Source: Hamiltosporidium tvaerminnensis FI-OER-3-3
Taxonomy: Eukaryota > Fungi > Microsporidia
Reading direction: 5' to 3'
NCBI GenBank assembly: GCA_022605425.2
Contig: CM061255.1
Location: 310,001 to 374,000 of the forward strand
Length of the DNA: 64,000 bases
Shown one piece after another: positions 12,279 to 63,741 of this stretch. The number at the start of each line of letters is the position of its first letter. Positions within the stretch are counted from its first letter, which is position 1. Made by a program: the position numbers and the translations under genes. Under the pieces are notes generated by a model. That model did not search any database and had not been told where the DNA came from. It worked only from the letters and a program-made list of their open reading frames with translations.

Positions 12279-12313
12279 ATTCAAAGAGATAATATAATTG
12301 TAATATATTTCTT

Positions 12314-12541
12314 AGTGGAGAGAGGATAAGCACATTAAAAACTATCTGCTTGGCAATGACTGTCAATGAAATGGTGTGAAGATCATTGTTGAGATTTTTG
12401 CGGGATATAAACCACGCTGGATCTATAACCCAATCTCCTATAATCCCGAATTACAACATATTAAAAGACACGGATGAAAAACTTCCATTTGTTCCTCCTA
12501 GGCAACGAGAGGTAAAGAGGAATGGAATAAGTAAGTAAGCA
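12314..12541 (+). mobile_element. Family S short SINE-like element
   Basis: First ~100 nt are homologous to the family L head; the body is different and has a 3' hairpin TTCCA..TTCCTC/GAGGAATGGAA. 13-bp TSD TAATAT(A/C)TTTCTT at 12301-12313 and 12542-12554 (one mismatch). Confidence 0.8.
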
Positions 12542-19804: not shown

Positions 19805-21477
19805 CTGTTATGCTCGTTGAAACGAACTTTATTTTACATTTACCAAATAAAAAAAATATCGATTATTATCTTAAAATTCAATATCCGAGCTATATATTAT
19901 AAAATTTTCGATAGGAATTTTAACTCACCTGGTCCGTTTCTCGAATATTGTTTTTAGTCTTTTTTTTCAGAATTATTAGCAGCTTTTGAGCAATTCCCTA
20001 AAAAAAATTTAGGGTTTTCTAACCTGCATATTTCTCTTCCTCTTTAATCGATACTTCTAATTGTTTAGAGCAACTACTCGGCATATTTTGTTAGTCTGTT
20101 CACTTTCCACCTATGTATATTCCATCTCGTCTTCTTTCCCGAAAAAAATTATTCTATTGAAGCGGCTTTTTGTCTAAAGAAATAGTTCTTTTAAACTAAA
20201 TGCTTATTGGTTATTTTATTTATTATATAAATCCAAAACATATATTTACAAATATTTTAATTTAATCAAGTATCAATTTCCATATTTTTCTAATAAAATT
20301 GTTTTATACAATTATTATTGAGGTATAACTAAACTGCGCCTTGAAAAGCCAAACATATATCCTTCTTATCACAACTGTTTATTCATAGTGAAAACTCCTA
20401 GGAATATAAATCCGAATAAATCAATAAATTTTTTTTTCAAAAAACAAAACTTTAGAAAATTAAAAAAAGTTAATTTTTTTTGTATTTCTTATGTGGAGGG
20501 AGGATAACCACATAAAAAACTTTCTGCTTGGCAATGAGTGTGTGAAACTGGTGTGAGATCATTGTTTGGATTTTTGGTAGAAATAAAACCACACTACATC
20601 TTTGGTTGTTCCATGGGAGTTGTTATGAGGAGGAGAGGTCTAAGAAATGGAGAAACTTTTTCTACAAATTTATTTGTAGTTTTTTATGTAACCAGATTGC
20701 AGACCGCAGCTGAACATGTAGGTAATTGCCATGTAAAAGCATGGAAACCTAGCCTTGCTCACTCGGGTTAGAAGACTTAGCGCCTGGGAGATACAAAACA
20801 AAAAACCATTTAAAGCCAGGAAAGCTAAGTAGCAGGTTATACCTGTTGGTATGACATTGCACTGTCTAGGTGGACCCCATGTAAATCTCTGAAATATATC
20901 TTAGCTAGAAGTTTATTGGGTTCAGAAAGTGTAGAGTAAGTGGGAATGCTGCATAGTCTTGGGGGAGCCCAGGGGGGGCTTCGGCCTTCGATCACACTCC
21001 ATGCAACGGACATTAACGAACTCCGGGCAACTGCCTCGCCTATTAATTAGGTTCTACACACCTGGTAGATGAAAGGCTTTGAGACGTAGGTATCGCAGGG
21101 GTTACCGATGGAGTTTTGGGTAGCAGTTATTTATGTTAAACCTAGAACTGCGTTAATGTCATGAAAACAAATATAACACTTGCTACTGTTTTAAAAAAGA
21201 TGTGATACTTTTAAATAAAGTTTGTATTTCTTGATAGAGAATATAATTTAGGAGTAATTTACGAATTTTCTTCCTAATGTTTTTTTGAACAAATAAAATC
21301 TTTTTAGGTGTCTCATGTTCAATTCTACTCACTATTATTGGTTGTGTAAGTTTTATGAACAAGTAAAAAGAGTCAAAGTTTGTTTTGAGCACTCTTATTG
21401 GTGTCTTGTAGTTTTTAACAATTTAAATATTTTGAGGTGAGTCGTCTTCTGAACATTACTGAATTATATAAATGATG
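19805..21477. repeat. Dispersed ~0.9 kb repeat, copy 2, split by family L copy D
   Basis: Homology to 14325-15255 stops at the SINE and resumes after it. Confidence 0.7.
20491..21220 (+). mobile_element. Family L SINE-like element, copy D
   Basis: 12-bp TSD TTTGTATTTCTT at 20479-20490 and 21221-21232. The paralogous empty site is visible near 15000. Confidence 0.88.
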
Positions 21478-26520: not shown

Positions 26521-28770
26521 TAAGTTTTTAATAAAAAAACATATTTTTTACAGAAAGATTTCTGTTTTTACATTCTGTAAATAAATTCTTAGGGATTAAG
26601 TTAAAGAAAACGATCTTTATTCAAAGAATCATAATTTTTTTTTATACTTATAAATAACAATAGCGTATTTTCATTTTATTATATGTGAATTCACCCCTTA
26701 AGTCTCTTATTTTGATCTTATATACGAGTCTTCAGTGTATTTCGATAAGATATTCAATACCATATGTTTTATAGATGACCTCTTTTTTTGTTAGTTATGC
26801 TTTTTATATTGAATAAATTAAAAAAAAATATATTATATTTTTTTAGTTTTTGTAAAAGTATGCCAGTTCGGTCACCGTGAGAAAAACAGCGGAGAATTAA
26901 TAATCTAGACCCGTGAAAAATAATTTCAAAAGGAATATATTTAGTAAAATTACCAGATATGTATCGGAAAGTAAGAGAAGACGAGGTTAACATCGAAAAA
27001 GATGTCTAAATAATATGGTAAAGTATCTAATAACTCATTGTGTGGCAAAGGGGAAATACAACGCGCAGTAGGGAAAAACGAAGAATAAATTTAAACAAAA
27101 CTTAGTTCTTCAAGATCCTAAAGTGCTGCGTTTTTTAGTAAAAAATATGCCACGTTCGCACTAAGAATAACATAACTGAAACTTCATATGAATATTAGTT
27201 GAATACTATTATGATTTTATATGTGTAACATCATCTATGTAAATTCAAAACCATTGCTTGCACCGCAGTTGATTCTTATTTAATACTTTGAATAAATATT
27301 TTAACTTATATAATTGCTAAAGAAACCAGAAGAACTCTAGTTAGAAATTTAGATTACCCTACTTTAATTGATTATAATAGTTTTATATAAAAACATTAGA
27401 GATATATTTGATTACAACTGTTTTGAATTAAATAGACAAATATGTTTTAAACGCTTAAATAAAATAATTTTTGTTACTAATCCTATTTCAAAATGGAATA
27501 ATTTTTTTATCAGACATTTGATTGTCTTGTAGTTACATTAACTCTATATCTTTACCGTAATATGATGGAGGCTAAAATACATTTTAAAACCCTCAAAATT
27601 TAATCTAGTATATTCTACAGCAAAGTATCTCAAAATGAAATTTTATTTTCAATTATTTTACGCACGATATTTTCTTGCAATTCAGAAGATCTTTAATTAG
27701 ATCGTAAAATATATGTTTTATAAATAAATTCCAATTTATTTATTCAAAAAGTAATTAATATCATAAGAAATTTTTCTTAACCATTAGTTTAACCATTTTA
27801 TAAGATAATGTATAGGTTCTTATTCTTGTTATATTTACACATTAGATCTTTAGAACTCCGGAAAATTATAAAAATATAAGTGATACGATATCATTCGTGT
27901 TCAATGAAAGTTTGAATATATTGTTTAAAAAATAAAGCCATCTAAAATTGTATTTATTTGCCATCCGCCAACTTTTAGTAATAAATAATTCATTAATGGA
28001 TATTTTTATTCCTAAAAAGAATATCTCGCAAGTTTTTTTAATTTTGTTAGAACTTAAAGACTTCAATCTTCCAAGGCTCATACAATATATATGTATGTTT
28101 ACTGTTTAAAATAAATACAATCTTTATTTATTAACATTCTTGATGATATTAGACATTTCCATTCCATTGACTGCAAACTCTGAAGTATTGATTAAAATAT
28201 ACGTAAATGAAAATTTTAATACCACTGTAGAAAATATTTGAACTTGATAGATTTAAAAACTTTAATTAACTAAATTTTTTTTTCAAAAGTATGTATCTAA
28301 AATTTAAATTTTTTCTTTTAATACTTTTACACATTATTTTTGTCTTCTAAACCCGACTCACCTTCTATGTTTTTTCAAAGGATTTTTTCGAATGGTCACT
28401 GCAGTTAAAACCAACGTTAAGCTATTTTACCTATTTCCCAAAATCTTCTTTGTTTCTTGGTTCTCAGGAATGAAATATTGGTTTTTAATGTCTTTAAAGT
28501 ACATGCATAAGCTTCATTTATGTTTCATCTTAGCACTTTAATAATTTAAACTAATATAAGACATACGTATCGATCAAAATAAATTATTTCGACGTTCTTT
28601 AAATAATATAGTGATTATTTTTATGTATTATATTTATGGGTAATTAAGCTTTAAGATTTATCTAATAATATTTTGCTCAGGCTGTCGCAAATTTTCGGAT
28701 AAGAAATTATCGAACTCCAAACCTATAAATAAGATTTATTTGATCAAAATACTCCTTACTTCTTTAGTTT

Positions 28771-29120
28771 ATTTTTAGTTCGAACTATTTAAAGTACAAA
28801 TGTTTATATTATTTTTAGTTCGAACTATTTAAAGTACAAATGTTTATATTATTTTAGTTCGAACTATTTAAAGTACAAATGTTTATATTATTTTTAGTTC
28901 GAACTATTTAAAGTACAAATGTTTATATTATTTTTAGTTCGAACTATTTAAAGTACAAATGTTTATATTATTTTTAGTTCGAACTATTTAAAGTACAAAT
29001 GTTTATATTATTTTTAGTTCGAACTATTTAAAGTACAAATGTTTATATTATTTTTAGTTCGAACTATTTAAAGTACAAATGTTTATATTATTTTAGTTCG
29101 AACTATTTAAAGTACAAATT
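28771..29120. repeat. 40-bp minisatellite, ~9 near-identical copies, each with the 12-bp palindrome TAGTTCGAACTA
   Basis: Unit ATTTTTAGTTCGAACTATTTAAAGTACAAATGTTTATATT; two units are 1 T shorter; no spacers. Confidence 0.97.
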
Positions 29121-31835
29121 TTTCATAATTCTTTTACTTTAAAAAGTGAAATTTTATTTTTGCTCGATCTAAAATAAATTTATAAGATTCATTGTTCTAC
29201 AGGTTAACATAAACTTGTTTCTTGATATCCAATTTTAATCCACACACTTATGTATCGAGAAATTCTCGAACCGAGTGATTCCCAATTTATTTTTTAAGAC
29301 CGGAACTTCTTTACATTCCAGAATAATAAGTATAGACTTCTAAAAACTGCCTTATGCAGTCATATTTATTCATCTTTAAGCAATTTTGCATATACTTGCT
29401 AAATGCTATATTTTTTTACTTTGCTGATTATCGTAATGATATTTTCCTTCGCACTTCTAATAAAGTTCTACCTTTAATTTTTACATCATTGGAACTGATT
29501 CAAATCTGTTTTATTTGTGTAAATTAATTCTAAAAAAATAGTGATTAAATTTTTGTGGCAATCCTAATGTATAACCTTTACAAAAAAATTATATCAAATT
29601 TAATCTATCATAAACATCATGAGCTTGTATTATCTTCATTTGAAAAAACTATAACAATCAGCCTAGTTTAGAATATTTCTAGTTTAGAAATAAAGTAATA
29701 TTTGCCAAAATTGTGATTGTAATCGATTAGAAGAAGAAATAATGGTTGTTAAAGAGGTAGAAGGAAATTTATAAACATCTACAAAAATTTTAACCAGAAT
29801 TTATTAAATAAAGAAAATTGTAATTGATTATTTGTTGTAAATTTAGAAGATTGCTGATTCTGTATTAGGCGTGAAAACATAATATAAAAACATAGCAGTA
29901 AATTAAAAATGCGTTGCTTTTACACTTAACTTATAAAAAATTTACACAAATAAATTTCACTAATGTTCATAGCAATGGTTACTCTATAAACAACCTAAAA
30001 TAAATTTATTTTTTTGAATCTTTGAATTAATAGTATTAAGCAATTGCATTTTTTAAATTGATATAAAAGCATTGGTGTATTTAGTCAACGTGATCACACC
30101 GATTTTATATTATACTCTTGTATGACATACTTATTACAATCTTTTATCTAAAAAAATCTATGTAAAGATAGTTCTTTATAGAGTTAGGTTTTATATTCTA
30201 ATCAAGTAACAATAATATCTAGTATAAACAAAAAGATTGAAACGGCAGTATAAATATCGATTTGCATGCACCAAAGAAAGTAAAAAATTTAATAATTTTA
30301 AACAAATCGAAACCAAATATATAATATTCTTTCGAACAATTTATTATAAAGTTTTAGAGTTATATGCTTTGAAAAGATCAAAATAGAAATAATCTGATAA
30401 TAAAAAAACAAATTAAAAATTTCAAATCTAACTAGAAGCCTTTCCGAAAATGTAAAGGTGACCTTCGATAATAAATTCAAAAGAATAGAAAAAGTTAGTC
30501 ACAGAAGAAAAAATATTAGAGATAAACAGAAATAAAATCAACATATTCGCCTATAATGTATCATTTGGTTTTCGTATTTTCCAAAACCATAAAATATAAA
30601 TATATATATTCAAAGCAATAAAAAAAACGCATTTGTTTTAATATTAGAAAAATGAATTGTATAAGAAGTAAAAGTTTGTTTGAAAGCTAACGTAACGAGA
30701 GTAAAAGTACCAATTAAATGTTTAAAAGATATTTTACAAAAAAGATTTCTTCAATATTGAAAATTTTAAGGTAGTTTATTTTTTATGATGTAAAAACAAT
30801 AGCAATTTTAATGAATTTCTTAAAATTATTTGTAGAAACAGTGTTTAAAGGTTTCTAGAATAGACCCTAGGAAGATGTTAGAAACTGTATTAATATAGCA
30901 ATATAGATCTTAATTATTTAAGCGACTAAAATCAATGCAAATGCCGAAATTTGAACAAGATCATTATATTGTTTAGAAAAAAACATTTTTTTAATATTTA
31001 TGATATATCAATATCATTCTAAATAAATTTGATTAAAAAAAGATCTTTTGATATTTTTGACATGATAAAATACTTTTTTAATTTATAAAAAAATTCTTAA
31101 CCGTTGTATGTTCGAAGGAAAAACCTGGAAATAGAAAAACAATTTTTTTAAATAGAACATCTTCTTGGAGTTAAATATTAACGAATGTGATATTTATATA
31201 CACAAAGAAAAATTTGATGTTTAGTATTTTTTCTTTTTTAGATATATGATTCGTTAGTAGAGAATGGGTAAGAAAAGAAATTTGAAATAATTTAACATAT
31301 TTAGAATTCTTTATATTAGAAATAAGTTGATTGATTGATTTTATTTTTTATTGGTGTTATATTCTCTAAATATTTTTAAAAAAATTGATTTGGTGTTAAA
31401 ATTACTGTGAAAATTATTTTTTTCGTATATAAAGGATGTTATTTATAGAACTGTTTACCCCAAATCATATGAGAATTAAAATGTCAATAGAAAACACTAA
31501 GAATGAGACAAATCAACCAGAAATTACAATTGCATGTAACCGTAGAAATCAAGTTGATCTAATCAAATTGATCTACAAACGTACTTTCGAATCATTAACT
31601 TAGTTGTTAATTCACGTGATTTAGATCAATGATCAAATCGATATGGTGTTCTAGTTACTTTGACATGTTCAAGTAACAAATTGGTGTTACATATGGTTAC
31701 TGCTCTGATGCAGATTTTGGAGGTTTTCCGTTGTTACTTTGGTTTCTTGTGCTGCTTTATTCATCGGGATTAAGTTATGGACTCAACGAGTCAATTGTGT
31801 GTGATTTGGATGTGACGTGTAATGGTATATTTGTG

Positions 31836-33140
31836 CAACAGGTTGATTCTGCCTGACGAGGATGCTTGTCTCTGGGATTAAGCCATGCAAGTCTGGTGAA
31901 GCGAAAGTGGAACTGCGAACGGCTCAGTAGAACGGTGATTATTTAATCGTGTAGGAAGGATAACCGCGGGAAACTGTGGCTAATAACACGAGTAAGACGC
32001 CGACCCATCAGTTTTATCGTACGGTAAGGGCGTACGATGGCTTTAACGGGTACGGGGGATCAGGGTTTGATTCCGGAGAGGGAGCCTGAGAAACGGCTAC
32101 CAGGTCTAAGGACAGCAGCAGGCGCGAAACTTGCCCAATTGGAGAGAGGCAGTTATGAGACGTATATTTTGTAACCGGGGTAGAATACCGGTGATTGACT
32201 GGAGGGCAAGTCTGGTGCCAGCAGCCGCGGTAATTCCAGCTCCAGGAGTGTCATAGTGCATTGCTGCATTTAAAAGGTCCGTAGTCAGTGTTGACAGGGA
32301 TGCTAGAAGACACTTTCTTCATGGAGTGTATTGGCATTCTAGGTTAGCATGTAGGAGCGGAAGAGGGCGACTGTATTGCGTAGCGAGAGGTGAAAGTTGA
32401 CGACCTACGTAGGACAAACCGAAGCGAAAGCTGTCGTCCAGTACGTTTCCGGTGATCAAGGACGTAAGCCGGAGGAGCAAAGGTGATTAGAGACCCCTGT
32501 AGTTCCGGCCGTAAACTATGCCAACTGGGTGTTACGTAGTGGTACCCACGAGAAATCAAGTATATGGGCTATGGGGATAGTACGATCGCAAGATTGAAAC
32601 TTGAAGAAATTGACGGAAGGACACCACCAGGAGTGGAGTGTGCGGCTTAATTTGACTCAACGCGGGACAACTTACCAGGGCCAGTTGTATGACGAATCTT
32701 TGATGAGTACGACTAAGTGGTGCATGGCCGTTCACAACATGTGAGGTGACTTTTAGGTTTATTGCTGTAATGTGTGAGACCCTCAGCTACGGCGACTGGG
32801 GACTATAAGTTTCAGGAAGGAGGGGGCTATAACAGGTCTGTGATGCCCTTAGATGTTCTGGGCTGCACGCGCACTACAATGTTATTTCTAGAGGTATATT
32901 GTAAAGATAAAGGATAACTCGGTTGGGATTGCGTTCTGTAATGGACGCATGAACCAGGAATTCCTAGTAGTCGCGTGTCACTAACGGGCGACGACTGCGT
33001 CCCTGTTCTTTGTACACACCGCCCGTCGTTATCTAAGATGGTGCTATGTTCGAAGAGGGTTTTCCTTCTGAGGACGTAGGATTAGATTGGATACAAGTCG
33101 TAACAAGGTTGCTGTAGGAGAACCTGCAGCAGGATCAGTG
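31836..33140 (+). rRNA. Small-subunit (16S-like) rRNA, microsporidian type
   Basis: CAGGTTGATTCTGCCTGAC start, GTGCCAGCAGCCGCGGTAAT, GAAATTGACGGAAGG, TGTACACACCGCCCGTC and AAGTCGTAACAAGG...GGATCA end; ~1.3 kb. Confidence 0.98.
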
Positions 33141-33174
33141 ATAGTACTTTTAATGTGTAGTTTTTTCATTTTAA
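33141..33174 (+). other. Single very short ITS (~35 nt)
   Basis: T-rich spacer between the SSU 3' end and the 5.8S-like start ACTCATACAAGGGATCACTTGGCTC. Confidence 0.85.
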
Positions 33175-34847
33175 ACTCATACAAGGGATCACTTGGCTCC
33201 GTATCCGAGGAAGGCCGGAATAGTTTCCGAGAACTAAGGCCGAACGGCATTTGTAAATGCCTGACTACCCCCTGGACTTAAGCATATTATTAAGGGGAGG
33301 AACAAAAACTAACTAGGATTTCTGTAGTAGCGGCGAGCGAACAAGAAATAGCCCCGAATGTAAGCCTCCGGGCATTGTTAAGATCGTCGTAACGAATTAC
33401 CGGGACAGGTAAGCCATAGAGGGTGATAGCCCCGTAGTGACGAGTAATGGGCAGAGTAGGGTTGCTTGGTAATGCAGCCTGAAGAGGTGGTGGGTTCCAT
33501 CTAAGGCTAAATATGAGCGGAGACCGATAGCGTAATAGTACAGCGATGGAAAGGTGAAAAGCTAAAAAGTGCAAAGACGTGAAATTGTATTGAGTATCCT
33601 GATAACAGGACCCGTCTTGAAACACGGACCAAGGAGTGCATCTGCATAGCAAGTTAAAGGGGGGTTTCCTTTAAGCGTAGCGAAAGCAGATATAGCTGTT
33701 CGGATGCGACCCGAAGGGCTGTGAACTACACCTGGCCAGGTTGAAGCCATTCGAAAGGATGGTGGAGGACCTAAACTTGTTCTGACGCGCAAATCGATGG
33801 TTTGAGCTGGGTGTAGGGGCGAAAGACCAATCGAACAGCCGGGTAGCTGGTTCCCATCGAAATGTCTCTCAGGACAGCAGACACAAGTTATTTAGTATTA
33901 TGCGGTAGAGGAACGGCGGGATGAAAGGGGAGCAATCTCCACATACCGACGAACTGCGAACGTGTACGTGTTATTCTTGTACTAAAGAATAGCGATTATA
34001 TATGTGTCTAGTGGGCGCGTTCTGGTAAGCAGGACGTGCGAAGAGGGATCAACCTGACGTACTGATAAGGGGCCTAATCTGGTTTTTCTTAAGGCCGTAG
34101 ATGAATTGTGACAGTAGGGCGGTGGCCATGGAGGTTGGCATCCGGTAAGAAACGTGTTGCAACGTACCTACCGAATTCATGTGCGCCGAAAATGGACGGT
34201 ACAAGGCCAGACCCGATGCAGTACTTATAGGTAGATGGGCGTGGTGTATGTGCAGAAGGTTTACCGTGAGGTAAAGTGGAGCATACACTAGTGCTGATCT
34301 TGGTGGTAGTAGTTACAATTCGTGTGTGAATCGCGAAGGCTTCAGGAGAAGGGTTCTTCTAAGATTTAATAAGGAGAAGGTTAGCCGGTCCTGAGATCTC
34401 GACAGGGAATCGGGTTGATATTCCCGAGCCATCTAGGTATTTGGCAACAGTAAATATGGTGTTTACGTCTTAGGCACGACAACAAGGAGGTACCCATTCC
34501 TTGTAGCAGTACTGTATGTAGCGTGTTGTACAGAGCAATACAGGCATATGCAATTGTCTTAGCTGGGATCCGTGAAAAGATACCTTTATGACCTAGATGA
34601 CCGTACCGACCGCAGCAGGGCTCCGTACGGTGTATACCGGAAGCGATAGGACAAACGTTAGTTAGGGAATTCGGCAAATTAGATCCGTAACCTCGGGAAA
34701 AGGATTAGCTCTAAGGAATTAGAACTTTTAGTTACGGGGAATCCGACTGTTTAATAAAAACATAGCTTTGTGGTGGTGTAGTACGTGGACACAAAGTGAA
34801 TTCTGCCCAGTGCCCAGCTGTTAAGACAGGTCGGGCTGTATACGCAG

Positions 34848-34901
<54 letters not shown>

Positions 34902-34998
34902 CCTAATTAGTGACGCGCACGAAAGGAGCAACGAGATTCCCACTGTCCCGACTAACAACCTGCGAACCCACGAGCCAAGGGAACGGTCTTGGCTATGC

Positions 34999-35035
<37 letters not shown>

Positions 35036-35311
35036 GTGACGCCGGGGTCTTGTGCAGCTGTAGCAAGGTGGGGCAACTGAAAGACCACTAGCTGTGCAAG
35101 CGACCCGTATTTGTCAGATGGGGAGTTTGACTGGGGCGGTACATCTGCTAGACTACAACGCAGATGGCCTAAGGGTGGCTAACTTCGGAGAGAAACCGAG
35201 GGTGTAGTCCAAGGGCAAAAGCCACCCTGACGTATTACTACACGGTAATACGAGGGGAAACCCAGGCCTAGCGATCCCATTGCTTACAGAGCATCTAGCA
35301 ATGGGTGACGT

Positions 35312-35343
<32 letters not shown>

Positions 35344-35447
35344 AGCCGAGCGACCATAGCGACGCTGCTTTTTGATTCTTCGATGTCGGCTCTTCCTATC
35401 ATGGTGCAGCAGAAGGCACCTAGTGTTGGATTGTTCACCCACTAACA

Positions 35448-35485
<38 letters not shown>

Positions 35486-35731
35486 TAGTTTTACACTACT
35501 GCTACGGTACTAAGGGAGCAGATGCTAGTACGAAAGGAACGAATCTGCAGGACCTCTTGTCGTGCCTATATCTGGTAAGGTACGGGCTAAGCAACGTCCT
35601 GGCACGGAAGAGCTGAAGGCCTCTAAGCTTCAACGTGGCCCTACTGTACTATCTAGCATGAAGACGACGTGCTTGGGTGCTGCAGCTGTAATCCACAAGA
35701 TCGCGAGTGGATGAGGCTAGCAAGCACTCAT
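33175..35731 (+). rRNA. Large-subunit rRNA with covalently fused 5.8S (no ITS2)
   Basis: 5.8S motif GGATCACTTGGCTC runs straight into ACCCCCTGGACTTAAGCATAT. Also GACCCGTCTTGAAACACGGACCAAGGAG, CTCTTAAGGTAGCCAAATGCC and the sarcin-ricin loop AGTACGAAAGGAAC. Terminal helix TGGGTGCT (35674-35681) pairs with AGCACTCA (35723-35730). Confidence 0.97.
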
Positions 35732-35789
35732 GACGAGAGATGATCACCACCTCCACGTGGTTCTCGTTGGGTAACGCCAAGAGTGATCA
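35732..35789 (+). ncRNA. Minimal HDV-like self-cleaving ribozyme abutting the LSU 3' end
   Basis: P1 GACGAGA/UCUCGUU with G1-U wobble; P2 UGAUCAC-C/G-(A)-GUGAUCA; P3 ACC/GGU; L3 UCCACGU; P1.1 CC/GG; J4/2 GCCAA with putative catalytic C at 35777; P4 reduced to GUAAC. Confidence 0.88.
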
Positions 35790-37349
35790 AACATCAAAAA
35801 AAATATAAAGGATTAAAAACTAAAAAAACTAAAAAAAAAGTAAACAAAAAAATGATTTCAAAAAAAATTCAAATAGGATAAATATAACGAAAGAAACATT
35901 TTATCACCTTACAAAATTAGGATCTAAGCAAAAACGCATTTGCTTTTTTTACATAATCTATTTGTGTGACATTTAAATAATTTCCACTAATTCTACTTAT
36001 AAGAACACATACCAGATATGTTTTAAAATATCACTTTTTAAAGATTAGAGTCTTTATGTATGCTTGGATATCTCATTACCAATTTGATTTTTAAATACAT
36101 TTCTTCCTTTATATAAGCAAAAACTATTTTAAAAGACAGCATCGAGATTTCTAATTGAGAAAAATTTAGTATCATATCTATTATTTTTTTCATATGCTTC
36201 AAAGTTTTCAATATTTTTAAACTAAGACATGTACTGTAATGTAATATTTTGCCTACCTTTATATATTATTTTATCAGAAACGTAAATTTTTTAATATTCA
36301 CAAATTGTTTTTCATAAAAAAATTAAAGGAATGTTCGAATAACGATAATTTTTTACTTTAACGAATCATATATATTTCCATTAATTTCATATGCTAGAAA
36401 GATTGAAAATTATAACGGTCTAATAGACTACATATTAAATATCCAAATCTGTTAAAATACCATATATAACATCAAAATTTAAATTTATAAAAATATATAA
36501 ATCACGGAATTAATGTATTCATGTTTAGAATATTAAAATGGCCAAGGATCTTAACCTTTTAATCATTTGAATTATAAATTCAAAAAAAAGAATATATTTG
36601 TCAATCTTAGATAACATATAAATAAAAAAAATAATAAATATATGGACATACATTGCTGTAAAACATAATTTATGTACACATTATAGAAAAAATTTCTTAA
36701 CTAGCATCTCTTTGTTCAAATAAAAGATAGACGACGATGCGCGAAAATACTTTAAAGGATATATAAAAAATTTTAACAAAAAAACTTTATGAGATGAATA
36801 AAACAATATACTAGTGGCTTTATTTATTGAACATTAACTAAAATTTGAGATTTTTCTATAGCGTTATAATAATATATTTGCTAAGTTTTGAATTATGAAT
36901 ATAACTGCACAGAAAAGAAAAAGCAAAATATAGAGGCATATTTGCCAATAATAATTTACTCAAAAAAATAATGGTAGATTTAATAATTCAAATGTTTAAA
37001 ATAGATAGACAAGCATCATTTATAAAATTCTAAAATTTTAATTTTTGGATCTCAAATCAGTATCAAGCATAAATTTCTGTTTGGTAATGAATAAAAAATT
37101 TTTTGTTAACCATTGAAAAATTGGATTTTTAAGTTATCACTTAACGGATCTAATATTAAGAAAATTTAGAAAAACAAATATATTAAAATAAAAGAATGAA
37201 TTGAGTGAAATTTTTGTATTATATAAAAATAATAGATTCTTGGCACTACAGAGTTACCAAATTACATTAAAAAGAAATATATACCAGAAATATAAAATTA
37301 ATTCAATAGATTGAACAAAGACAATAAAAATATAAGGTAGATAATAAGC

Positions 37350-37407
37350 GACGAGAGATGATCACCACCTCCACGTGGTTCTCGTTGGGTAACGCTAAGT
37401 GTGATCA
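37350..37407 (+). ncRNA. Minimal HDV-like ribozyme forming the 5' end of the element
   Basis: 56/58 identical to 35732-35789. J4/2 GCUAA with catalytic C at 37395. G1 directly follows the TSD. Confidence 0.9.
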
Positions 37408-38057
37408 AGCAAAACCCCCTTACGGTTTTATGTTACGACGGAATGTACTATAGTTTTACGTGGCGTTAAGCGCCGTTCCAACGGGAACAGCAAGTTGCTC
37501 AATCGGTGAGCATATTTCTTCTGGGGCGATACAAAGAGGTAAATGCGACTGCGACGCAACGAGATTCTCGGTTTACCTAGGCACTTGTCGATGCTAAAAC
37601 CCTTACTTTAACATCAAGATGAGTCTACCTGAATGTGATTGGATCGAAGATTCCATTAGGAATCAAATTGTGTTTGAAATCTTCTTATACTAAGGAAAAG
37701 AAAGGTATAAAAAGTGCTCTTGGAAGGGGAGTGGCAAGCTGCTGGGCTGCAGCAAATTTGTTCGGCACAGTTAAAGACTTAACAAATCAGAAATGATATG
37801 TTGAAGACTTGACGTGCCGGACGTTAATGTGTAAGTGTGGGATTTTAGGGATTTTTATGTGACCTTCTAGAACCGAAGTCCAAATGTGGATATGGTGGCT
37901 GTACACAGCCGGGTCGGTTTTATTGGATTTTTGTTTTTGAGTGTGGTGCATGGTATGGAAATGAATAGCTTAGTTTCCCTTTAAAAACAATACAACGAGT
38001 AGTGCTGAAAACTTTTTATCAATAAAGCCGAATTTTATTTATTTATTTATTTTATTT
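37350..38057 (+). mobile_element. 708-bp non-autonomous, internally deleted LINE derivative with 5' HDV-like ribozyme
   Basis: 15-bp TSD AGGTAGATAATAAGC at 37335-37349 and 38058-38072. (TTTA)n-like tail. Segment TGTTTGAAATCTT...GTGCTCTTGGAAGGGGAGTGGCAAGC (~37672-37739) is homologous to the LINE ORF2 C-terminus at ~47233-47309. Confidence 0.9.
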
Positions 38058-41000
38058 AGGTAGATAATAAGCAAAAGTATTAAATTATAATGATTGAAGT
38101 TTATGCATAATGGTTCAAAAGTTCTATTTTTATCAAAAAAATTAAATTTGAATATGAATTTTAAGTTAGCACAATTCTAAAAATTATGAAAATATACAAT
38201 AATTGAATGATTATACCCTTTTGTCAATAGTAAAAAACCTATTGGATTATCTTTATAAAAATATAGCAAGCAGACAACATGATTTGTCACAAGGAATGCA
38301 TATTTCCTATAATATAATGGGTTTTAAATTGATCTTAGAACAATATATTTTTAATGTTATATTATATAATTTAAAAATCTTAAAAATCCTTATATTTATA
38401 TGAATTTTATGGTAATTAATGCCAAAATGATAAAATAATATTAAGAGATATTAAAATTGGTTTTAAAATGATTAACATATAGTAATATGACTATAAATTA
38501 ATCCAAAAATTTTGTTTTAGTTCAATTAACGGAAAAATTCATAAATATAAACGAAATAAAAAAGACTTTACAACATATATATTTATTAAATCGCGTCACA
38601 GTATATGAACAGCAATTGTTTAAATCGTTTCACAACAGCTAACAACTTATTAAGTAAACCACAATCTTTTATCCCGTAAAAATTGATTTAAGTCGTTTAA
38701 TGAATGTTTCTTAAAACAGAAATTTTTCCAATCAAAATAGTCGTTAAACCATACATAACCTCCTCTTTTTTTTAATTTCGATGAGCTTTATTAATGTTAA
38801 TGCTGCAATATTCTGCAAGAATAAAATAATACACACAATTTTAATCTATATCTTTAATTTTTATGTACTGTTCATACTAAAACTTGACTAAAACTAGTTA
38901 TAATTACAATTTTTAAAGAAAATAAAAATCCACATGCATAGGGAATATGAAGTAAAAACTAAATAAACCGTAAATATACAAACCAGAATTATATAAATTA
39001 TCTTGAGTGAAATTTATTTGAAATTAACGTCTTTAACTATAGAATGAATGTTACTTTTCTTAAATTTACCATTTGCTGAAGTATTTAAATAATAGGTTTT
39101 CGAAATCATAATGGAAGCGTCTATTCCATAAAAAAATATAGAAAACTGCAAATGTAATTATAAAATGTTTCGTAAAATTTTGTTTTGTAATTTATATTGG
39201 TTTTCTATTCAACTTCCATTGAAGCTTACAATTAAATGACCATGATGTGTAGAACCCTATTAAAAAAAACGTACAAAGTATTGTAAGTACAATATAAAAC
39301 CAAATTTCACGTTTCGGTTTGAATAAAAATAATTATAAATAATTTAAGAAGAGGTTAGTTAATGTCTAATTATTTTATATCCAAGAGAAAAAAATTTTGT
39401 TTTATCAAAATAATAAATACGGAAACAATTTTTTCAGAATAAAATAAAGGTATAAAAAATTTAAAACAATAAAGAATTAGAAGAACATTAACAATTTATT
39501 AAAATTTATGCTAATATTTCATGGTCTAAAACGAAAAATTTTTATTTCGTTAATCATAATAATTTTATACTTCAACTAGCAGTAAAGAAGTAAATCACTG
39601 ACTGAAATTTTATAAATTAGAATCGAATTTTCTTCTTTATAAAGTAAGAATAAGATATATTTTCTCTTTAATTTAAAAAAGTTTTTGTGATCTAAATTCA
39701 CTTTGGAATGCCGTTTTTACCAATATTTAAAACACATTCCCAATCATAGCATAAATAAATTGTAACAGAAACCAATAAAGATGACTTATATGCGCCTTGT
39801 ATTAATCAGATATCAGATCGAAAAAGACGGATATTCCGAGATATTAAAAACAAAAAACAATTCAAAATATACAACTTTAAAATTAATAATTTTATAAACA
39901 AAAAGAAATATTTTAATATAAATGTCGTATATTAAGGCTTTTAAAGCCGTTAATAACTAACCAACTATTGTACATTCATCATGGTGTAATTTATCTTATT
40001 CTAACGTATAAGTTTGACATATATACCACAATTTTCAAGGTTTAAAGCCGTATTTCAGGGTGAGAATATTCCTGTACCCTTCTCAAATATATAAAAAATG
40101 AACATTTTAATCAAAGTAAAACAACTGTCTAGCCTATGATTAAGCCATAAAACGGAACATTTTTACTTTAGCATAACTGCATTCAAACTTTATTTATGTT
40201 ACATTCTTTATATTCACTATATATTCGAAATTTTTTTATAAAATTAAAATATAAGAGTAATAAAGGATGGTGTTATTTTATCTATAAATTACATAGATAT
40301 GATCACAATATATAAAAACAAAATATCTTATAGAAAAAAAGTTTTGAGTTGAAATCGAAGGGGCTGAATAGTCAGATAGAAAAATTCTTGTAGATAATAA
40401 TCCTACTGTTTACTTATATACGAAATATACGATCGTGTATATATTATACTACATTTTAATAAAATATCCGAAAACTTTTTTAATTTTGTATATTTGGCAG
40501 TTGTTTATATAAAAGTTATTTGATCTTGTTACAATGTCAGGCTAATAAAATCAATAATTTTGTGAGATTATAGTGTAATTTTGGGTTTTTCACATGTTAG
40601 GTTCTATGTGCATTTAAAAATAACAAGGCGACCGTGTTTCTTTATATAGTACTAGTCATCGGAACGAGATGATTTGATTTGTAAAAAAGGCTTTTAACTA
40701 GATATATTCTCATGTGTGTTAGTTGCACAAGTAATTAAATCTAACATTGTTAAATTAAAAAAGAAGACGTGTGATACCTACTCTATTATGCTATTATCTC
40801 AAAATTTAATCCCTTCATGTTCGATATAATTCTTTCATAGAACAAGATCAAAATATTTAATTTATATTGTGAGCAGTTTCGCATTAGTCAACCAATATCA
40901 TGTGTTATATCATTTTTAAGCATTAGAATTTATAATATAACCAGAGGGCTTTATAATTTTCTTACATTACATGGATTTTTAGTTAATTTCTTGCTTGGCT

Positions 41001-42424
41001 TTTCTAAAGTTCCAAAAAAGAAATATACTATTAATACGTTAAAGTAAAAAAGATTTTTCTGCTCTATTCATTTTTTTGGTCTTTTATGTGATATTTTAAG
41101 CGAGACCTATGATAGAATAACCATTTTGAAACAGCGTCCAGGAATATTCTTTAACTGAATACCTGTTCTTAAATAGCCCCAAAGATAAGTTTATAGTAAA
41201 CGCGAGGATGGTGTAAAACGTATCATAAACGCCTTTTTATTGTATTATTTTTCTCTGCATAAAGTTTTTCTGTAATACCAGAATTTTTTTGATTTTCAAC
41301 TTCAAAGAAATTCAGATTATTTTAAAGATATATGATTCACTAAGATAATGTAGGTCAGCGTTAGTAACTATTATCTCATGCAAATAATATGTATATTATT
41401 AGATATAATATAAATCAATTACATCGTTTTGTAATTTAAAAAATGGAACTCTCTTATATCCTTAATGAGATTCAGAAAACTAAAAGGATTTTCTTTAAAA
41501 AATATATTTTTCTTTAGATTTTTGTTAATCCTAAAACCAGTTTAAATAACCCAGATAATTTAAAAATTTGTTTTTTTAATGGTGTATATGAAAGATTTAT
41601 ATCTTACAGTCCTAAATGTTTTTTATAATTTTGACTAGTTCTAATCTTTTCGAAACGCAGTAATTGTTAAAACAGATTTGAAAAACATTTTTACGACTAA
41701 CATTTTTCTTTAAATACGTTTTTTACTACAAAAATATAATAGATTTATATTTTAAATTCTTGCATTTTATACAATCATCCTTAGGGTTATATATCTGTTA
41801 AATGTTTATTATATTTGTAAGTAATATATTTATTAGATGGAATATAAATACAAGAATAGAAAGAAAAGCACCAAGCACTCAATAAAGTGAGCAAAGAAAT
41901 GTACAAAAAAATTTAAGCAAAATTTAGATGGTAAATATAGATAGGCATACTTGATATTTTTCTCCATATATTCTGTATTTAGATATAATAAACTAAAAAT
42001 ATTTTTAGTATAATAAGAATAAAAAAGAAAAATGCAGGTATACGATCAGAAGAAATAATAAAATAAGAAAATTTTAAAATTTTCTTTTGAAAATAAATCC
42101 GGGAGTAAAAATATATTTATAAATCGAGAAATAGAAACCAAATGTATGACGACTATTGTGTTGTAAGGCGCCCATGGGCAAAAGAAAAATATCGGGAGCG
42201 GTTGAAAATCGCAAAAAATCAAGATGTGAGAATACGGGTGTGAAGAGTAGGAATTTCGACGACTTTGTTTCCAGCTCATCGAGGACTAGCCACCCTCGAG
42301 TTGTGAGCCCAATCGACTGTTTTTTTCGGCGTCTTCGAAACAGGAGGAGTGTGCGGCAGCCACGCACAAGGAGAGTAAAAAGTGTACAGATAATAGGAAT
42401 GTAAAGAGTTTTTTTGGGACAAGC

Positions 42425-43723
42425 ATGCCAAAGCACACACGGGATGTGCCGCTGACCAGCCAGCGAAGTTTCCCGGAGGAGAAAGAGGCACAGACTTTGT
42501 CTGTTCTTTATGCACTTGCTTCTAAGAAAATAACACTACTTGAAAAAAGAGTGGAAAAATTAGAAGAAGAGGAAAAGAGATATAAAAAAACTCTTATGTT
42601 GGCAAAGACCAACTCGATTGCTTTATGGGTACACTTTAAAGGAATTGAGAAGCTACGTAAAGTACCTAAAAGGTCGCGTAGGTGCCGTACTCACAAGTAC
42701 ATGATAACGGCTGTAGCACCTGTTTCCTTGGTTAGGCTAGAGGCAGGAGCCAGAGACCCTCAGGCTAATCCAGCAGCCAGTGAGTTAGTCTGCAATGCTG
42801 CAGAACTAACAGAGAAACCACTCGAGCAGAATTTGGTGGTAAATGAGGCGAAATCTCAGTCTTTCGGGCCAACTTTGGCTGCACGATCTGCATTGGCAAA
42901 AGCTCGATCTTTGGTTAAACAGATCGTGTTAAGGACAGGCATTTTTACTGATCTGACTGCAAATGCTGTTGACTCTCTTGCTGCTGGAATCTGCCCAGTG
43001 GAAGTGCAGATCTGCAACGCAGCAGAATCTCAAGGCTTACAAGCTGAACGTGCAATGAATGTAAGTCATCAAGGGGCAAGGCCTGTTGAATGTGGTACGG
43101 GCAATACCACACTGCCTCCGATAGCAACTCCTCGTTCTATCGAAAAAAATTTACCTGAAAAGACTTCCGTAAGTGCTTCGGGAAAAGGTCTTAAGGATAA
43201 AAATAAGGAATTATTTGAGAGCAAAGCAACTGGTAACCCAGCCAGTAAACCGAGAGCCGTCAAATTGCAGACTGCTAAAAAGCCTTCCTTCGATCGTACT
43301 AAGGCACCTTCGAAGCAGAGTAGAGGGAAAATTAACCTAAACAGAGCACAGTGTGAGGATGTTGTGCAAGGCAAATCACCATTTGTCTTGAATAGGTTTG
43401 TGCTCCTTTACTTAGTTGGAGTTAAAGTGAACAAACCCGCTTATTTAAGAGCAGTCTTGGAGAATGGGGGCGTTTAATCTCACTATGTAAAGCACGTAGG
43501 CTTCACTAAAGAAGGCCTGTTAGAGTTGCTTGTTAATGCTAACAGTGTGGATAAAGTTAAAGCCATTTTTACAGGTTTTAAAGGTGTTAAGACGTTTGAT
43601 AATTATCTTAACAAAGGCAGTTTCGAAGAGATTGGAGAGCGGTTATCTGAACTTAAGCGCAGACTCTCATGGGTCGAGCGATTTAAAGATAACCCGCCGG
43701 TTAGGAGGTTCCTTAGATTATGA
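42425..43723 (+). pseudogene. LINE ORF1-like reading frame with premature stop
   Basis: ORFs 42425-43477 and 43526-43723 are in the same frame, separated by one TAA. Coiled-coil-like LEKRVEKLEEEEKR. Confidence 0.65.
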
Positions 43724-44143
43724 AGCATATTTGCGCTCGGAATGCCTCTCAAGAAGCCTCGAAAATCTTCTACGGATTAGAAGATGTGGTACTTGAGGAG
43801 CCAAAGAGCTCCTCTAGCCTATAGTCAGGACTGTCAGAACTGTTGACACCTGCCAATAGATATAGCCGTGCAAAGCAGGTCCCGCGGTATACTCTGTCTG
43901 GGGTGTACCGCATAGGCATCGTAGTGTTTTTGCTAAAACACTAGAGACGAGAGGATACAAAGGTAAGCCTGTCAAGCGAGTTATACAGCGAGATGGACGT
44001 AAACGACTTGATGTGACTGTTGAGAGTGGGATAGACCCGGAAACAGTGCAAGCTGTGAGTAGGAAACATCTTGGGTACTGCAAAACCCATACACTAGGGA
44101 GAAAAAAGCTGTCAGAATTTGCACGGAATCGTATAGTAATCTT

Positions 44144-47100
44144 AGATTACTTACGCTGAATGTAAATTCCTTTGGATCAAAACGAGAGGAGGTTCTAATG
44201 CTGCCCGGTAAACTCCACCCAGACATTCTATGTCTCCAAGAGACATTACGCTACACAAGGAATTCTCGGAACGTTATTCCGGGATACGAGGTATTTGAAA
44301 GCTTTGCCAAAAAGGAGGAAAAAGATGGTAGAGGACTGATTTTAGCTGTGCGTCGTAAGTTAGATCTTACGTTATCTTCAGTTGAAGTACATCCTAACTT
44401 CTTAGCTGGAATTGTTTGTGGCAAAAAAGCGACTGGTGGCTAGTTAATAATGCTTGTTGTTAACGTGTACATTCCTCCGAAATGTTCACTATATGGCAAC
44501 AGAGCGAAAACGCTCGAAGCTCTAGGATCTTTTCTTGTTAGTAAAAACAAGAAAAACGGTTTGGATGATATTCTAGTCATGGGCGACTGGAATATGACTC
44601 CAGAAGAGGCTGCTAGGTTCCTGGCTGTCAACAACCTCTATTGCACGAATAAATGGTTATTCGAAGCACCGCGAGCTACACGTGCAGCAGCACACGGCGC
44701 CAATAGATGCATTGACTCTGCCTGTATCCGAAAAGAGAGTGGCGGAGGTAGTTGAGGTGCAAAGGAAATGGGATATCTCGGTTCACCTTCCTGCTACTGT
44801 TGACGTTAGGGTGGACACGCTCACACGAGCTGTACGCAAGAAAGCGCTCTTTTTACGCAAGTTTGTGGAGCAGTCACTTGCTGAAAAGCTTATAAGCTGT
44901 CCGACCTGGAACAGTTTCGGTCACAATACGGATCTTGGGATTTATGTTGCAGAAACTGTTAAAGAAGTAGTAAAAAAGTTAGGTCTTGAAGGTACTTTTT
45001 CAGATGGAAATAGTCTTTTTTTGCCTCGGAAGCTTAAAAAATCTATTAAATATAAACGGAGAGTTGCTCCCGAAATGAGAGCCAGCCGAGCTCATCCGAA
45101 CGCCTATGCTGTCCTCAAACGAAAGTGCGAGGAAATGAAGCGTCTATATAGGCGGCAGCTGAGAATAAAGTGGGCGCGAAAAGGTATTGTGGCGGCAACA
45201 AACCGCTGCATGAGAGACGTGTGGCAGTGGACGAGGAGGTCTGCTGGAATGCCCAAATTCTCGGCTGCCAATCGCACGGTTTTGGATGAAAAAGGCCAAA
45301 TTGCTTCGGATGAGACGACAGTGTTGCAGGTCTGGTACAACCACTTTCGTTCCTTAGCAACAATGAATGATGAGTTACAGAGCAAAGACACTTAAATGGA
45401 GTGTCTTATTGAAGATAACGGAACTCATTAGAATCATTTGATTGCTGTGCAAGAGGTTATTTCAGCGCTGCACAAGTCAGCAAGCAACAAAGCATGTGGT
45501 ATAGATGAGGTAACAGTAGAAGCGTACAAAGCTCTACTAATGGATACTCATGGCGTAAGTCTGATGGATTAGCAGATTTTACATGTGCTGAATGACGCCT
45601 GGACAAATAGAATACCTGACAGCTGGAGAGTGTCAGTCATAGTACCGGTACCGAAGAAAGGTGATTTACGAAAGCCTGGAAACTACCGCGGAATATGTCT
45701 GATTAACACCTTTCTTAAACTGCTGTGTAAGGTTGTGGAACGCCGAATGCGTTTGTATGTTGAGAATAATAACCTCTTGTGCCGGGAACAAGCTGGTTTT
45801 CGTACTCGAGAGGAATGTGTTGCTCAGGTGGCAACTCTTTTGGAAATTCAAAGGAGAAGATTCATTCGAGGTAGAGAGACAGTTTGCCTATTTATCGATT
45901 TCGAAAAGGCTTACGATAGAGTTCCTAATGATCTACTCCTCTTGAGACTAAAAGACAAGGCTATTCTGGAAAACTTCTGAGATTCCTTAAAGATCTGTAG
46001 ACTGATCTCCAGGTTGGTGTTAAATTAGGCGATAAAACAACAAGCCTATTCCCATATAATATCGGTCTGCGCCAAGGCTGTCCGTTATCACCACTGTTAT
46101 TCGATCTTTTTATCGATGAAATTTTTAGAGGTGTTAACGGTATAACATGCGAGGGTCTTAATTATAGGGTTCCGGGTCTGTTGTTTGCCGATGACACTGT
46201 CCTGTTCGGTGATGATGTGGCTGCCGTACAACTCAGTATGGATAGATCATGAGGTGGTGTAATACCTGGGGAACGCGTATTAATATAGATAAGTGTAGGT
46301 TGTTACTTCCTCCAGGTCTTACAGGTAACGTAAGGATAGGTGAAAAAGCAGTCCCGGTGGTCGAAACCTACAGATACTTAGGCATTGTTTTGAACCGCAC
46401 GTTTTCTCTAAAAGAAATGCTCAATGGGAGAAAAAAAGCTGTGTTTGCGGTCCGAAAAATGCTATGCCATTCCTCTGAAGGTCAGAAGTTCTGCTTTACT
46501 TTAAACTTCTGATCATAAAGCATGCATTATACCAATTGTAATGTATGGGAGCGAATTGTGGGGAATGAGCAAGGTCAGAATAGTATCTGTAGGTTGCGGC
46601 GTTACACGTTCTTTGGCAGCAGCTTTTGGATGCGAGAGAATTTTGCCCAGCTGGCAGTTTTCAGAGAGTGTGAGATCCAGCCTTCATATGAAAAGGTAGC
46701 TATGTCACGTGTAAGAGGCTTCTTGAAATCGCAAGAAAGCAGAACGATCATCCGGGACTTGCTAAATGGTAAGTTTACAGCAGGAAGAGAACGTGAGTTA
46801 CTCAAAACCGAATCTGGAAGAAAGCTTATACTGGAAGTCCTTTATCGGGTTTGAGTAACAAAAAGAATGGCCCGTAAATTAAAGAGACTATTGTTAAAAG
46901 GCAAGACCGAGCCGATAAGTCAGTTATAGGTGGCTTACGTAAAAACTTCGGTCTTAATAGTTGATATAAGTGGATATAAGTGGATCTACGCAGAGCTAAA
47001 TAACAGGGTGTTAGCTAGAAGTATGAGGATACTGCGTAGATTCAGAATAGGACTGGTTAAATTTAGTCCGCAACTGGCAGCTTTAGGAAGTTTGCCGATT

Positions 47101-47322
47101 AGGTATAGGGAACGCTGTCTATGTTGCGAGGAACCAGTCCGAGAAACTGTAAGCCATCTAGTGTTCGTGTATAAGAGGTGGAAAGTGGAGCGATGGATGT
47201 TTACGGCTCAGGTTACGAGAAGAGTTGTAAAATGTTTGAAATCTTTTGATGCTGTGGGGAATTTAGGATTGAAAGCGTTAGGAGTGCTCTTGGAAAGGGA
47301 GTGGCAAGCGCCGCAGTTCTAA
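44144..47322 (+). pseudogene. LINE ORF2 (AP endonuclease + reverse transcriptase + CCHC-like), multiple stops and frameshifts
   Basis: APE motifs LLTLNVNS, DILCLQET, VNVYIPP, VMGDWN, RCID, ISVHLP. RT motifs KACGID, NYRGICLI, EQAGFR, FIDFEKAYDRV, GLRQGCPLSPLLF, LFADD, YRYLG. Knuckle CLCCEEPVRETVSHLVF. Confidence 0.93.
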
Positions 47323-47459
47323 ACAACGAATTGTCATACCTGAAGATCTCCAATCGGTCAATATACCAAATAGAAAATAAGTATAAAATAGAAAGTTTTG
47401 ATATTATTTATATCACAAAAATATAATATTTTTATTCTATATTTAAAAACAAAAAAAAG

Positions 47460-47970
47460 GGGTATGCCATCATGAATAAAATTAATCAAGACGATTATTC
47501 TACTATAAATATACTTCTTTACCAATAGCATTGGAACAGTGAGCAGGAAGATATCTCCTTGTTGGAGATGTACTTCAAACTTAGCTGCCTTCCCGAAAAT
47601 TACGGGAAAAGGCTAATATTTATTGTATCACAACAATAATGTTCTTTATTTTTCAAACGTTCTAAGGTCTTTCAAAATAAATCAAATTTTCTAAAATTTA
47701 TAAATATAGAAATAAATGCAAACAAGAGAAGAAGTTTTGAGAATGACATGATGAAATTAATCGACAGGTAACCACAGGAAAGGCGTCAATGACAAATATT
47801 CACAAAATTAACTAGATATCACTTCAATATTAGCCAGAAATGGTTTTTTAATTAAAAATATTCTTAGCAAGAATGCAATCTCTTTAAACAGAACGTACTT
47901 CTAATTCAGCTTTCTATCAAAAAAATAACGTTCATCAATTTTATTTTCTGCAAATTTTACAGGATGGTAT
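47460..47970 (+). pseudogene. Possible highly decayed IS630/Tc1-like DDE transposase remnant
   Basis: Fragmentary translations NIYCITT..VLYF, NIHK, FLIKNILSK and IQLSIKKI fall in the order expected for the DDE_3 C-terminal half. Weak. Confidence 0.25.
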
Positions 47971-63295: not shown

Positions 63296-63353
63296 TGATC
63301 ACTCTTGGCGTTATCCAACGAGAACCACGTGGAGGTGGTGATCATCTCTCGTC
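63296..63353 (-). ncRNA. Minimal HDV-like ribozyme abutting the 3' end of the second LSU
   Basis: Reverse complement of 35732-35789 except G40 to A (window 63314), just after P1.1. Confidence 0.87.
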
Positions 63354-63599
63354 ATGAGTGCTTGCTAGCCTCATCCACTCGCGATCTTGTGGATTACAGC
63401 TGCAGCACCCAAGCACGTCGTCTTCATGCTAGATAGTACAGTAGGGCCACGTTGAAGCTTAGAGGCCTTCAGCTCTTCCGTGCCAGGACGTTGCTTAGCC
63501 CGTACCTTACCAGATATAGGCACGACAAGAGGTCCTGCAGATTCGTTCCTTTCGTACTAGCATCTGCTCCCTTAGTACCGTAGCAGTAGTGTAAAACTA

Positions 63600-63637
<38 letters not shown>

Positions 63638-63741
63638 TGTTAGTGGGTGAACAATCCAACACTAGGTGCCTTCTGCTGCACCATGATAGGAAGAGCCGAC
63701 ATCGAAGAATCAAAAAGCAGCGTCGCTATGGTCGCTCGGCT

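Follow-up and report, generated by a model that had tools for sequence, protein, structure and literature searches.

The stretch of DNA analysed here, referred to as the window, is 64,000 nt of contig CM061255.1 from the microsporidian Hamiltosporidium tvaerminnensis FI-OER-3-3. It contains ribosomal RNA (rRNA) genes (rDNA) in which the large-subunit (LSU) gene is directly followed by a 59-nt sequence predicted to fold as a self-cleaving ribozyme of the hepatitis delta virus (HDV) type, and in the spacer beyond, a nearly identical sequence forms the head of a short retroelement. Genome-wide results refer to the whole assembly (21,638,905 bases, 17 contigs); the paper describing this near-chromosome assembly (21.64 Mb, 17 contigs; PMC10542269) nowhere mentions rDNA. 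The relevant features of the window are as follows.

31836-33140: small-subunit (SSU) rRNA gene of microsporidian type (Rfam)
33161-35731, + strand: LSU rRNA gene with the 5.8S-like part fused, 3' end ...GCACUCAU (Rfam LSU_rRNA_eukarya and the bacterial LSU model)
35732-35790, + strand: ribozyme abutting the rDNA, predicted cleavage site between 35731 and 35732
35791-37335, + strand: AT-rich spacer 3' of the rDNA, homologous among loci yet divergent, the target region of retroelement insertions
37336-37349, + strand: left target-site duplication, 14 bp, GGTAGATAATAAGC, an exact 14-mer present on both flanks
37350-37408, + strand: ribozyme head of the retroelement, differing from the rDNA copy at U47 and U51
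37350-38058, + strand: 709-bp non-coding retroelement resembling a short interspersed element (SINE) or a short internally deleted element (SIDE), with ribozyme head, GC-richer body and (TTTA)n tail
38059-38072, + strand: right target-site duplication, GGTAGATAATAAGC
61026-61734, - strand: mirror retroelement, ribozyme at 61676-61734, duplications at 61012-61025 and 61735-61748
63295-63353, - strand: mirror ribozyme abutting the rDNA, carrying G40A, the sole variant among the ten rDNA copies
63354-64000, - strand: 3' portion of another LSU rRNA gene, convergent with the first and truncated at the edge of the window (Rfam match 63352-64000, - strand, 490 bits)

The LSU gene was matched by Rfam LSU_rRNA_eukarya at 33245-35733 (1743 bits), its 5' end near 33161 being placed by the bacterial LSU model. 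In the Rfam alignment the LSU homology ends two bases past the last helix, which is the predicted cleavage site, and the terminal 5-bp helix of the eukaryotic model is missing on both of its strands. Its absence fits an LSU that ends at the ribozyme junction. A terminal helix between the 5' and 3' ends of the LSU, which would extend the mature molecule into the ribozyme, was also sought, and only complementarities of 4-5 bp, at chance level, were found.

Four contigs carry the ten LSU 3' ends of the genome, in five rDNA pairs whose members converge tail to tail. Sites are named by contig and strand (eg C14+, C14-, C1b-), the loci being on C1 (two loci, C1a and C1b), C10, C14 and C17. All ten ends are directly followed by the ribozyme, identical in each apart from one substitution; it is fixed in all rRNA transcription units of this genome. 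Paired units are 26-40 kb apart and chromosome-internal, and each locus forms a large palindrome around a unique centre, the sequence 3' of the units being 90-94% homologous among loci over more than 7 kb.

Within the window a 46-nt probe found four copies of the ribozyme, at 35732-35790 and 37350-37408 on the + strand and at 61676-61734 and 63295-63353 on the - strand, with 0 matches expected in shuffled sequence. The four represent two sites, each doubled by an inverted duplication of about 5 kb whose arms, 97-100% identical, start within the LSU and extend about 5 kb beyond it. Genome-wide there are 15 copies, ten adjoining LSU 3' ends and five heading a retroelement of 702-709 bp. A search of the genome with the Rfam model RF02682 gave the same 15 sites and no other HDV-like ribozyme.

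What the rDNA and the element have in common is a block of 59-62 nt that begins at G1, the first base after the LSU, and ends just past helix P2. Copies in the window differ at position 47 (C/U), at position 51 (A/U) and, in one rDNA copy, at position 40 (G/A), none of which is in a pair. One further variant was found genome-wide, at position 44 (C/U) in three element copies, and for the young element copies an ancestor was inferred whose sole difference from the rDNA version is at position 47. Beyond the ribozyme all ten rDNA copies run into an A-rich spacer which differs between loci, and no element body, tail or target-site duplication is present at any of them. The limits of the shared block, the three differences and their position outside pairs, and the bare flank of the rDNA copy had all been described in a first-pass annotation of the window, and each was borne out. 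Collection of every genomic copy, a step proposed there, also established that the rDNA copy is not a rare truncated insertion, since in this genome it stands at each of the LSU ends.

In the predicted fold, P1 pairs positions 1-7 with 31-37 (7 bp, GACGAGA with UCUCGUU, including a G1.U37 wobble), P2 pairs 10-16 with 52-58 (7 bp) and P3 pairs 18-20 with 28-30 (ACC with GGU). P1.1 is formed by C22C23 and G38G39, ie between loop L3 (UCC) and the GG after P1. The core motifs, GGGUAA at 38-43 and GC(C/U)AA at 45-49, with C46 as the predicted catalytic base, align with those of the HDV and F. prausnitzii models, and the P4 position holds a single base only. Nested folding gave P2 and P3 for one copy and P1 and P3 for the other, as expected of a pseudoknot. 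The rDNA copy was matched end-to-end, with P4 absent, by HDV_ribozyme (RF00094) at 26.4 bits and by HDV-F-prausnitzii (RF02682) at 24.9 bits. Minimal HDV-like ribozymes without P4 have been described, among them a theta subfamily proposed to cut phage tRNA 3' trailers (PMC10879173); the P4-less subclass has no Rfam model.

The fold was tested independently by scanning metagenome contigs with a pattern that fixed the core only. This returned 99 stretches, where approximately two were expected by a rough estimate. A perfect 7-bp P1 was present in 75 of the 82 readable matches, and in 74 of those 75 a P2 of 5-9 bp accompanied it. A script was used to count covariation, the MAFFT alignment being out of register at P1 and P2 (the length of J1/2 varies). 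There were 58 distinct fully paired P1 helices, with three to six pair types per position; the first pair was G.U in 35, G-C in 21 and A-U in two, and the outer P3 pair was A-U, G-C or C-G. Twenty-one core positions were near-invariant across the class. Several of the matches lie directly 3' of tRNA genes, like theta ribozymes, and none was found beside an rRNA gene or the reverse transcriptase (RT) of a long interspersed element (LINE), in a scan from which entries for this genome or a very close one may have been missing. Judged by this pairing, the 59-nt sequence is predicted to belong to a genuine class of minimal HDV-like ribozymes without P4 whose helices covary, and it would be among the smallest natural HDV-like ribozymes with indications, of an indirect kind, of activity in vivo. 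Some of the metagenomic contigs (L133, L071) carry two minimal HDV-like ribozymes; the two in L133 (732-789 and 1602-1659) are identical, share the preceding 12 nt and are 870 nt apart, and may be a tandem or circular-RNA-like repeat.

P1 and P2, together 28 nt, are identical between the rDNA and element copies though freely variable across the class. The two ribozymes are therefore related by descent or conversion and not by convergence, and they are linked by exchange of a discrete module bounded by the ribozyme itself.

Copies of the element are 98-99% identical among contigs C10, C1 and C17, each with its own 5' flank, and their tails are (TTTA)n or (TTTTA)n. At another position in the spacer, the C17 copy is flanked by a separate 15-bp duplication; the C1 copy is at a third position. 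The paralogous C14+ site is empty, ie the target is uninterrupted and contains a single 14-mer, GGTAGATAATAAGC. Together the duplications, the tails, the empty site and the near-identity of the copies indicate that the element retrotransposes by a target-primed mechanism. The first-pass annotation had treated it as a retroelement, and the duplications and the empty site confirm a real retro-insertion with G1 as its 5' end; the label of LINE applied there was wrong, as this is a non-coding, SINE- or SIDE-like sequence whose longest open reading frame (ORF) does not exceed 66 aa. An older, fourth insertion, at C14-, begins GA..GATCACCACC and its ribozyme is riddled with deletions. G1 is the start of four independent insertions (C10, C17, C1b- and the old one at C14-), which suggests, indirectly, that the element RNA begins at G1 and that the ribozyme cleaves in vivo where predicted. 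An intact ribozyme-headed element is present at five of the ten rDNA units, as a result of three insertion events; of the other five, C14+, C1b+ and both C1a units lack it and C14- retains a decayed copy. In the C1b- copy the tail is followed by a different sequence (CCGGGACTTGCTCAATGG..., at oriented position about 1283) with no target-site duplication there, which suggests a nested insertion or a composite retroposon.

All of the insertions are at most 1.7 kb 3' of the LSU gene, in the spacer, at different positions (0.47-1.6 kb); none is at the conserved R2 site within the 28S/LSU gene. The rDNA orientation is common to all full-length copies and to all fragments within an rDNA locus, and five independent events are involved. 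Outside the rDNA loci, in 21.6 Mb of genome, there are short old fragments only and no full-length element. Given that the rDNA spacers make up less than 0.1% of the genome, confinement of all full-length copies to them indicates strong regional specificity. No promoter is visible in the element, and its confinement to the rDNA flanks in a single orientation fits a promoterless element transcribed by read-through of RNA polymerase I (Pol I). Expression by this route, as proposed in the first-pass annotation, agrees with the arrangement of every insertion, and we infer that it occurs.

Conservation at the LSU 3' end was expressed as the mean pairwise identity among the ten rDNA units, with positions counted relative to G1.

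Last 100 nt of the LSU: 0.996
Ribozyme, 1-59: 0.997
+60 to +79: 0.673
Further spacer: 0.81-0.87

In all five loci the homogeneous block gives out no more than 1-2 nt from the last ribozyme base. So sharp and consistently placed a boundary suggests that the ribozyme is part of the selected unit. In the old element copy at C14-, which lies 0.5 kb 3' of the rDNA unit, the ribozyme has decayed and the body is 88% identical, so that a position in the spacer does not by itself preserve a ribozyme.

The explanation we prefer, with a probability of about 0.7, is that a self-cleaving ribozyme is fixed in the rDNA of this organism and that its module has been exchanged with a retroelement transcribed by Pol I read-through. 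A Pol I transcript extending at least 59 nt past the LSU would cut itself at the LSU/ribozyme junction, 35731/35732. That read-through transcripts should do so follows from the activity indicated by the element copies, together with the fact that the rDNA copies differ from them at variable positions only. From the chemistry of the family, the products would be an LSU with a 2',3'-cyclic phosphate and a downstream RNA with a 5'-OH. The 3' end of the LSU, or of a precursor within a couple of bases of it, would be set in this way without a protein endonuclease. The RNA of the element would arise by read-through transcription, be released by self-cleavage at its own G1, and be copied into nearby spacer through target-primed reverse transcription by a LINE enzyme.

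In yeast, the RNase III Rnt1 cuts the 3' external transcribed spacer, and termination of Pol I by the Rat1 'torpedo' follows. The sole RNase III gene detected in the microsporidian genome is a 1245-aa ORF with two RNase III domains (C12:1624642-1625682), which is Dicer-like, and no Rnt1-like gene was detected there. This repertoire is circumstantial support for processing by a ribozyme.

A LINE is also present in the window, and the two features concerned are given here.

42100-47460, + strand (rDNA orientation): degenerate LINE with a frameshifted RT (RVT_1, E=9e-12), ORFs fragmented
37713-37739, + strand: 27-nt segment of the element, 26/27 identical to the end of LINE ORF2 (47283-47309) by local alignment

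The 27-nt block scored 49, compared with a maximum of 31 in 100 shuffles. Alignments of the element with other 5' and 3' parts of the LINE were not above shuffle level, and the two have unlike 3' tails. The 5' end of this LINE shows no ribozyme, and an exact-protein look-up gave no record for its ORF1. Sequences matching the initial 800 bp of the LINE occur in the genome only inside rDNA loci, once per locus and at the same position, and the C1a locus has two additional, 5'-truncated copies 0.37 kb after the LSU. It may belong to a LINE lineage specific to rDNA flanks, and is a possible relative of the autonomous partner of the element.

Other families of SINE-like sequences of about 700 bp, at 4323-5026, 11597-12363 and 20491-21197, occur as several direct or inverted copies with 84-95% identity, and have no relationship to the ribozyme-headed element. 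At 28693-29171, 2.7 kb before the start of the SSU gene, lies a homogeneous tandem array whose period is approximately 40 bp. The distance from the LSU 3' end to the host genes of the window is more than 10 kb.

The closest parallels are among retroelements. As in R2 and the R2 or R2/R1 SIDEs of Drosophila (PMC3414825, PMC3774820), an HDV-like ribozyme forms the 5' end of the element, and R2 is co-transcribed with rRNA by Pol I. The R2/R1 SIDEs are likewise short non-coding derivatives which keep a ribozyme and a 3' end, with duplications of about 14 bp, and in the R2 systems elements exchange ribozyme modules with one another and the RT jumps to other RNAs. Unlike R2, the insertions described here are in the spacer 3' of the LSU and not inside the 28S gene; the ribozyme is P4-less, 59 nt long and also fixed, free of any element, at every LSU 3' end; and no autonomous partner bearing a ribozyme was found in the genome. 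The Pr77 sequence of L1Tc and NARTc in trypanosomes (PMC3185411, PMC3383444) is a 5' HDV-like ribozyme, common to an autonomous and a non-autonomous member, by which the RNA of the element is released from co-transcripts. Pr77, however, doubles as an internal promoter and is dispersed genome-wide, whereas the present copies are found at rDNA flanks only and show no evidence of a promoter.

Two other systems are comparable in the placement of the cut. The theta and drz-Mtgn ribozymes (PMC10879173) have the same P4-less double pseudoknot, a near-identical core and a position directly 3' of a stable RNA gene, where the cut would create the 3' end of that RNA. They are found after tRNAs in phages and metagenomes, however, while the ribozyme here is in a eukaryotic nuclear genome, follows an LSU rRNA and is common to a retroelement. 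Theta ribozymes are those 3' of a tRNA in Caudoviricetes genomes, so that the architecture and the logic of placement alone are common to both. With the Rnt1/Rat1 system of yeast, for which the facts are long established, the predicted similarity is a co-transcriptional endonucleolytic cut just 3' of the LSU. The cutting agent, however, would be a ribozyme in cis and not a protein, the cut is predicted at the mature end or within about 2 nt of it whereas that of Rnt1 is later trimmed, and the ends would carry a 5'-OH and a cyclic phosphate. No paper was found in the literature that joins HDV-like ribozymes with microsporidia, or with the 3' processing or termination of pre-rRNA.

Several points weigh against a fixed rDNA ribozyme exchanged with a read-through retroelement. 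The Rfam scores, 24.9-27.3 bits, are below the gathering thresholds of 44-50, because P4 is missing while both models contain it. The covariation was observed in the wider class and not in orthologues of the rDNA locus, and identity of the core with that class is by construction, as the pattern fixed the core; the pairing of P1 and P2 is not. The element shares only 27 nt with the nearby LINE, and its autonomous partner was not found. A 5'-OH end is no direct substrate for an exonuclease of the Rat1 type, which makes any link with Pol I termination speculative. Finally, the conservation of the rDNA copies could be due to concerted evolution with the rRNA genes, with no selection on the ribozyme itself, the sharpness of the boundary being the sole counterargument.

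The direction of the exchange was considered separately. We put capture, in which the element took up the rDNA ribozyme RNA through a template jump of the RT, at about even odds, and domestication at roughly one chance in three, the remainder being left to other routes; capture is thus slightly favoured. The rDNA copy is fixed and sharply bounded, and the genome contains no LINE or other element with a detectable HDV-like ribozyme outside the 709-bp family. The shared block would correspond to the folded RNA, as might be expected of a compact, nuclease-resistant acceptor for a template jump. R2 ribozymes process 28S co-transcripts, and the R2 RT jumps between templates onto other RNAs in vivo (PMC3414825). 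In the R2/R1 hybrid SIDEs, ribozyme modules move between elements, and internal deletions of the SIDE type are documented (PMC3414825). A more specific account can be offered only tentatively and is rather doubtful. In it, the LSU 3' end is made by a cis ribozyme in place of an RNase III of the Rnt1 type, which the organism appears to lack; the SINE-like element stole the module by a template jump onto the exonuclease-resistant ribozyme RNA that remains after the cut, and would now employ it to excise itself from Pol I read-through transcripts. If true, a mobile element would for the first time have been seen to capture a ribozyme from the rRNA processing of its host.

Under domestication, a ribozyme-headed element without long terminal repeats (non-LTR element) inserted with its G1 precisely at the end of the LSU, its body was deleted, and concerted evolution carried the head to every unit, perhaps favoured by the clean LSU 3' end that it provided. 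Non-LTR elements (R2, L1Tc/NARTc) are known to carry HDV-like ribozymes at the 5' end, whereas a precedent in an rRNA 3' flank was not found in the literature. Insertions of this element family and of a LINE are concentrated in the rDNA spacer, the decayed C14- copy indicates that the ribozyme head of the element is old, and the required internal loss has its parallel in the SIDE-type deletions mentioned above. Such a history, however, needs a deletion ending exactly at base 59, leaves no body, tail or target-site duplication beside any of the ten rDNA copies, and lacks a source among the LINEs and other elements of the genome.

It is unlikely that the rDNA ribozyme is an inert passenger, ie a neutral remnant which rides on rDNA homogenisation and may cut read-through RNA, the LSU end being made by conventional nucleases with no gain to the host. 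The LSU and the ribozyme are equally homogeneous (0.996 and 0.997), as if conversion tracts spanned both, and the one rDNA copy with G40A shows no sign of removal. Unselected conversion is nevertheless hard to reconcile with a homogeneous tract that ends 1-2 nt from the end of the ribozyme in five loci, and an unselected ribozyme in the same spacer, that of C14-, has decayed. In addition, an active ribozyme at this position necessarily sets the 3' end of every read-through transcript.

Very improbable is the view that the host recruited the element for Pol I read-through transcripts as a second, fail-safe cut site, the role suggested for it in the first-pass annotation. The rDNA orientation and a location 0.5-1.6 kb 3' of the LSU in three loci are what it would lead one to expect. 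It was not supported, however: half of the ten units lack an intact element, the paralogous site is empty, one old copy has decayed, and the locus-specific positions and duplications are marks of recent transposition and not of a conserved host feature. Convergence on the same sequence, from the few positions left free in a minimal HDV-like core with 21 near-invariant positions, has a negligible probability and is rejected, since the 28 nt of P1 and P2 are identical despite the 58 distinct P1 helices of the class.

Few self-cleaving ribozymes of eukaryotic nuclear genomes have proven host functions. If the preferred explanation is true, namely that a ribozyme fixed in the rDNA has been exchanged with a read-through retroelement, this would be a ribozyme with a housekeeping role, formation of the rRNA 3' end, in a eukaryote with a stripped-down toolkit for RNA processing. 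The locus would also document the transfer of a ribozyme module between host gene and retroelement, its limits matching the folded RNA exactly. The origin and fate of retroelement ribozymes, a long-standing question, would thereby become directly testable at an rDNA locus.

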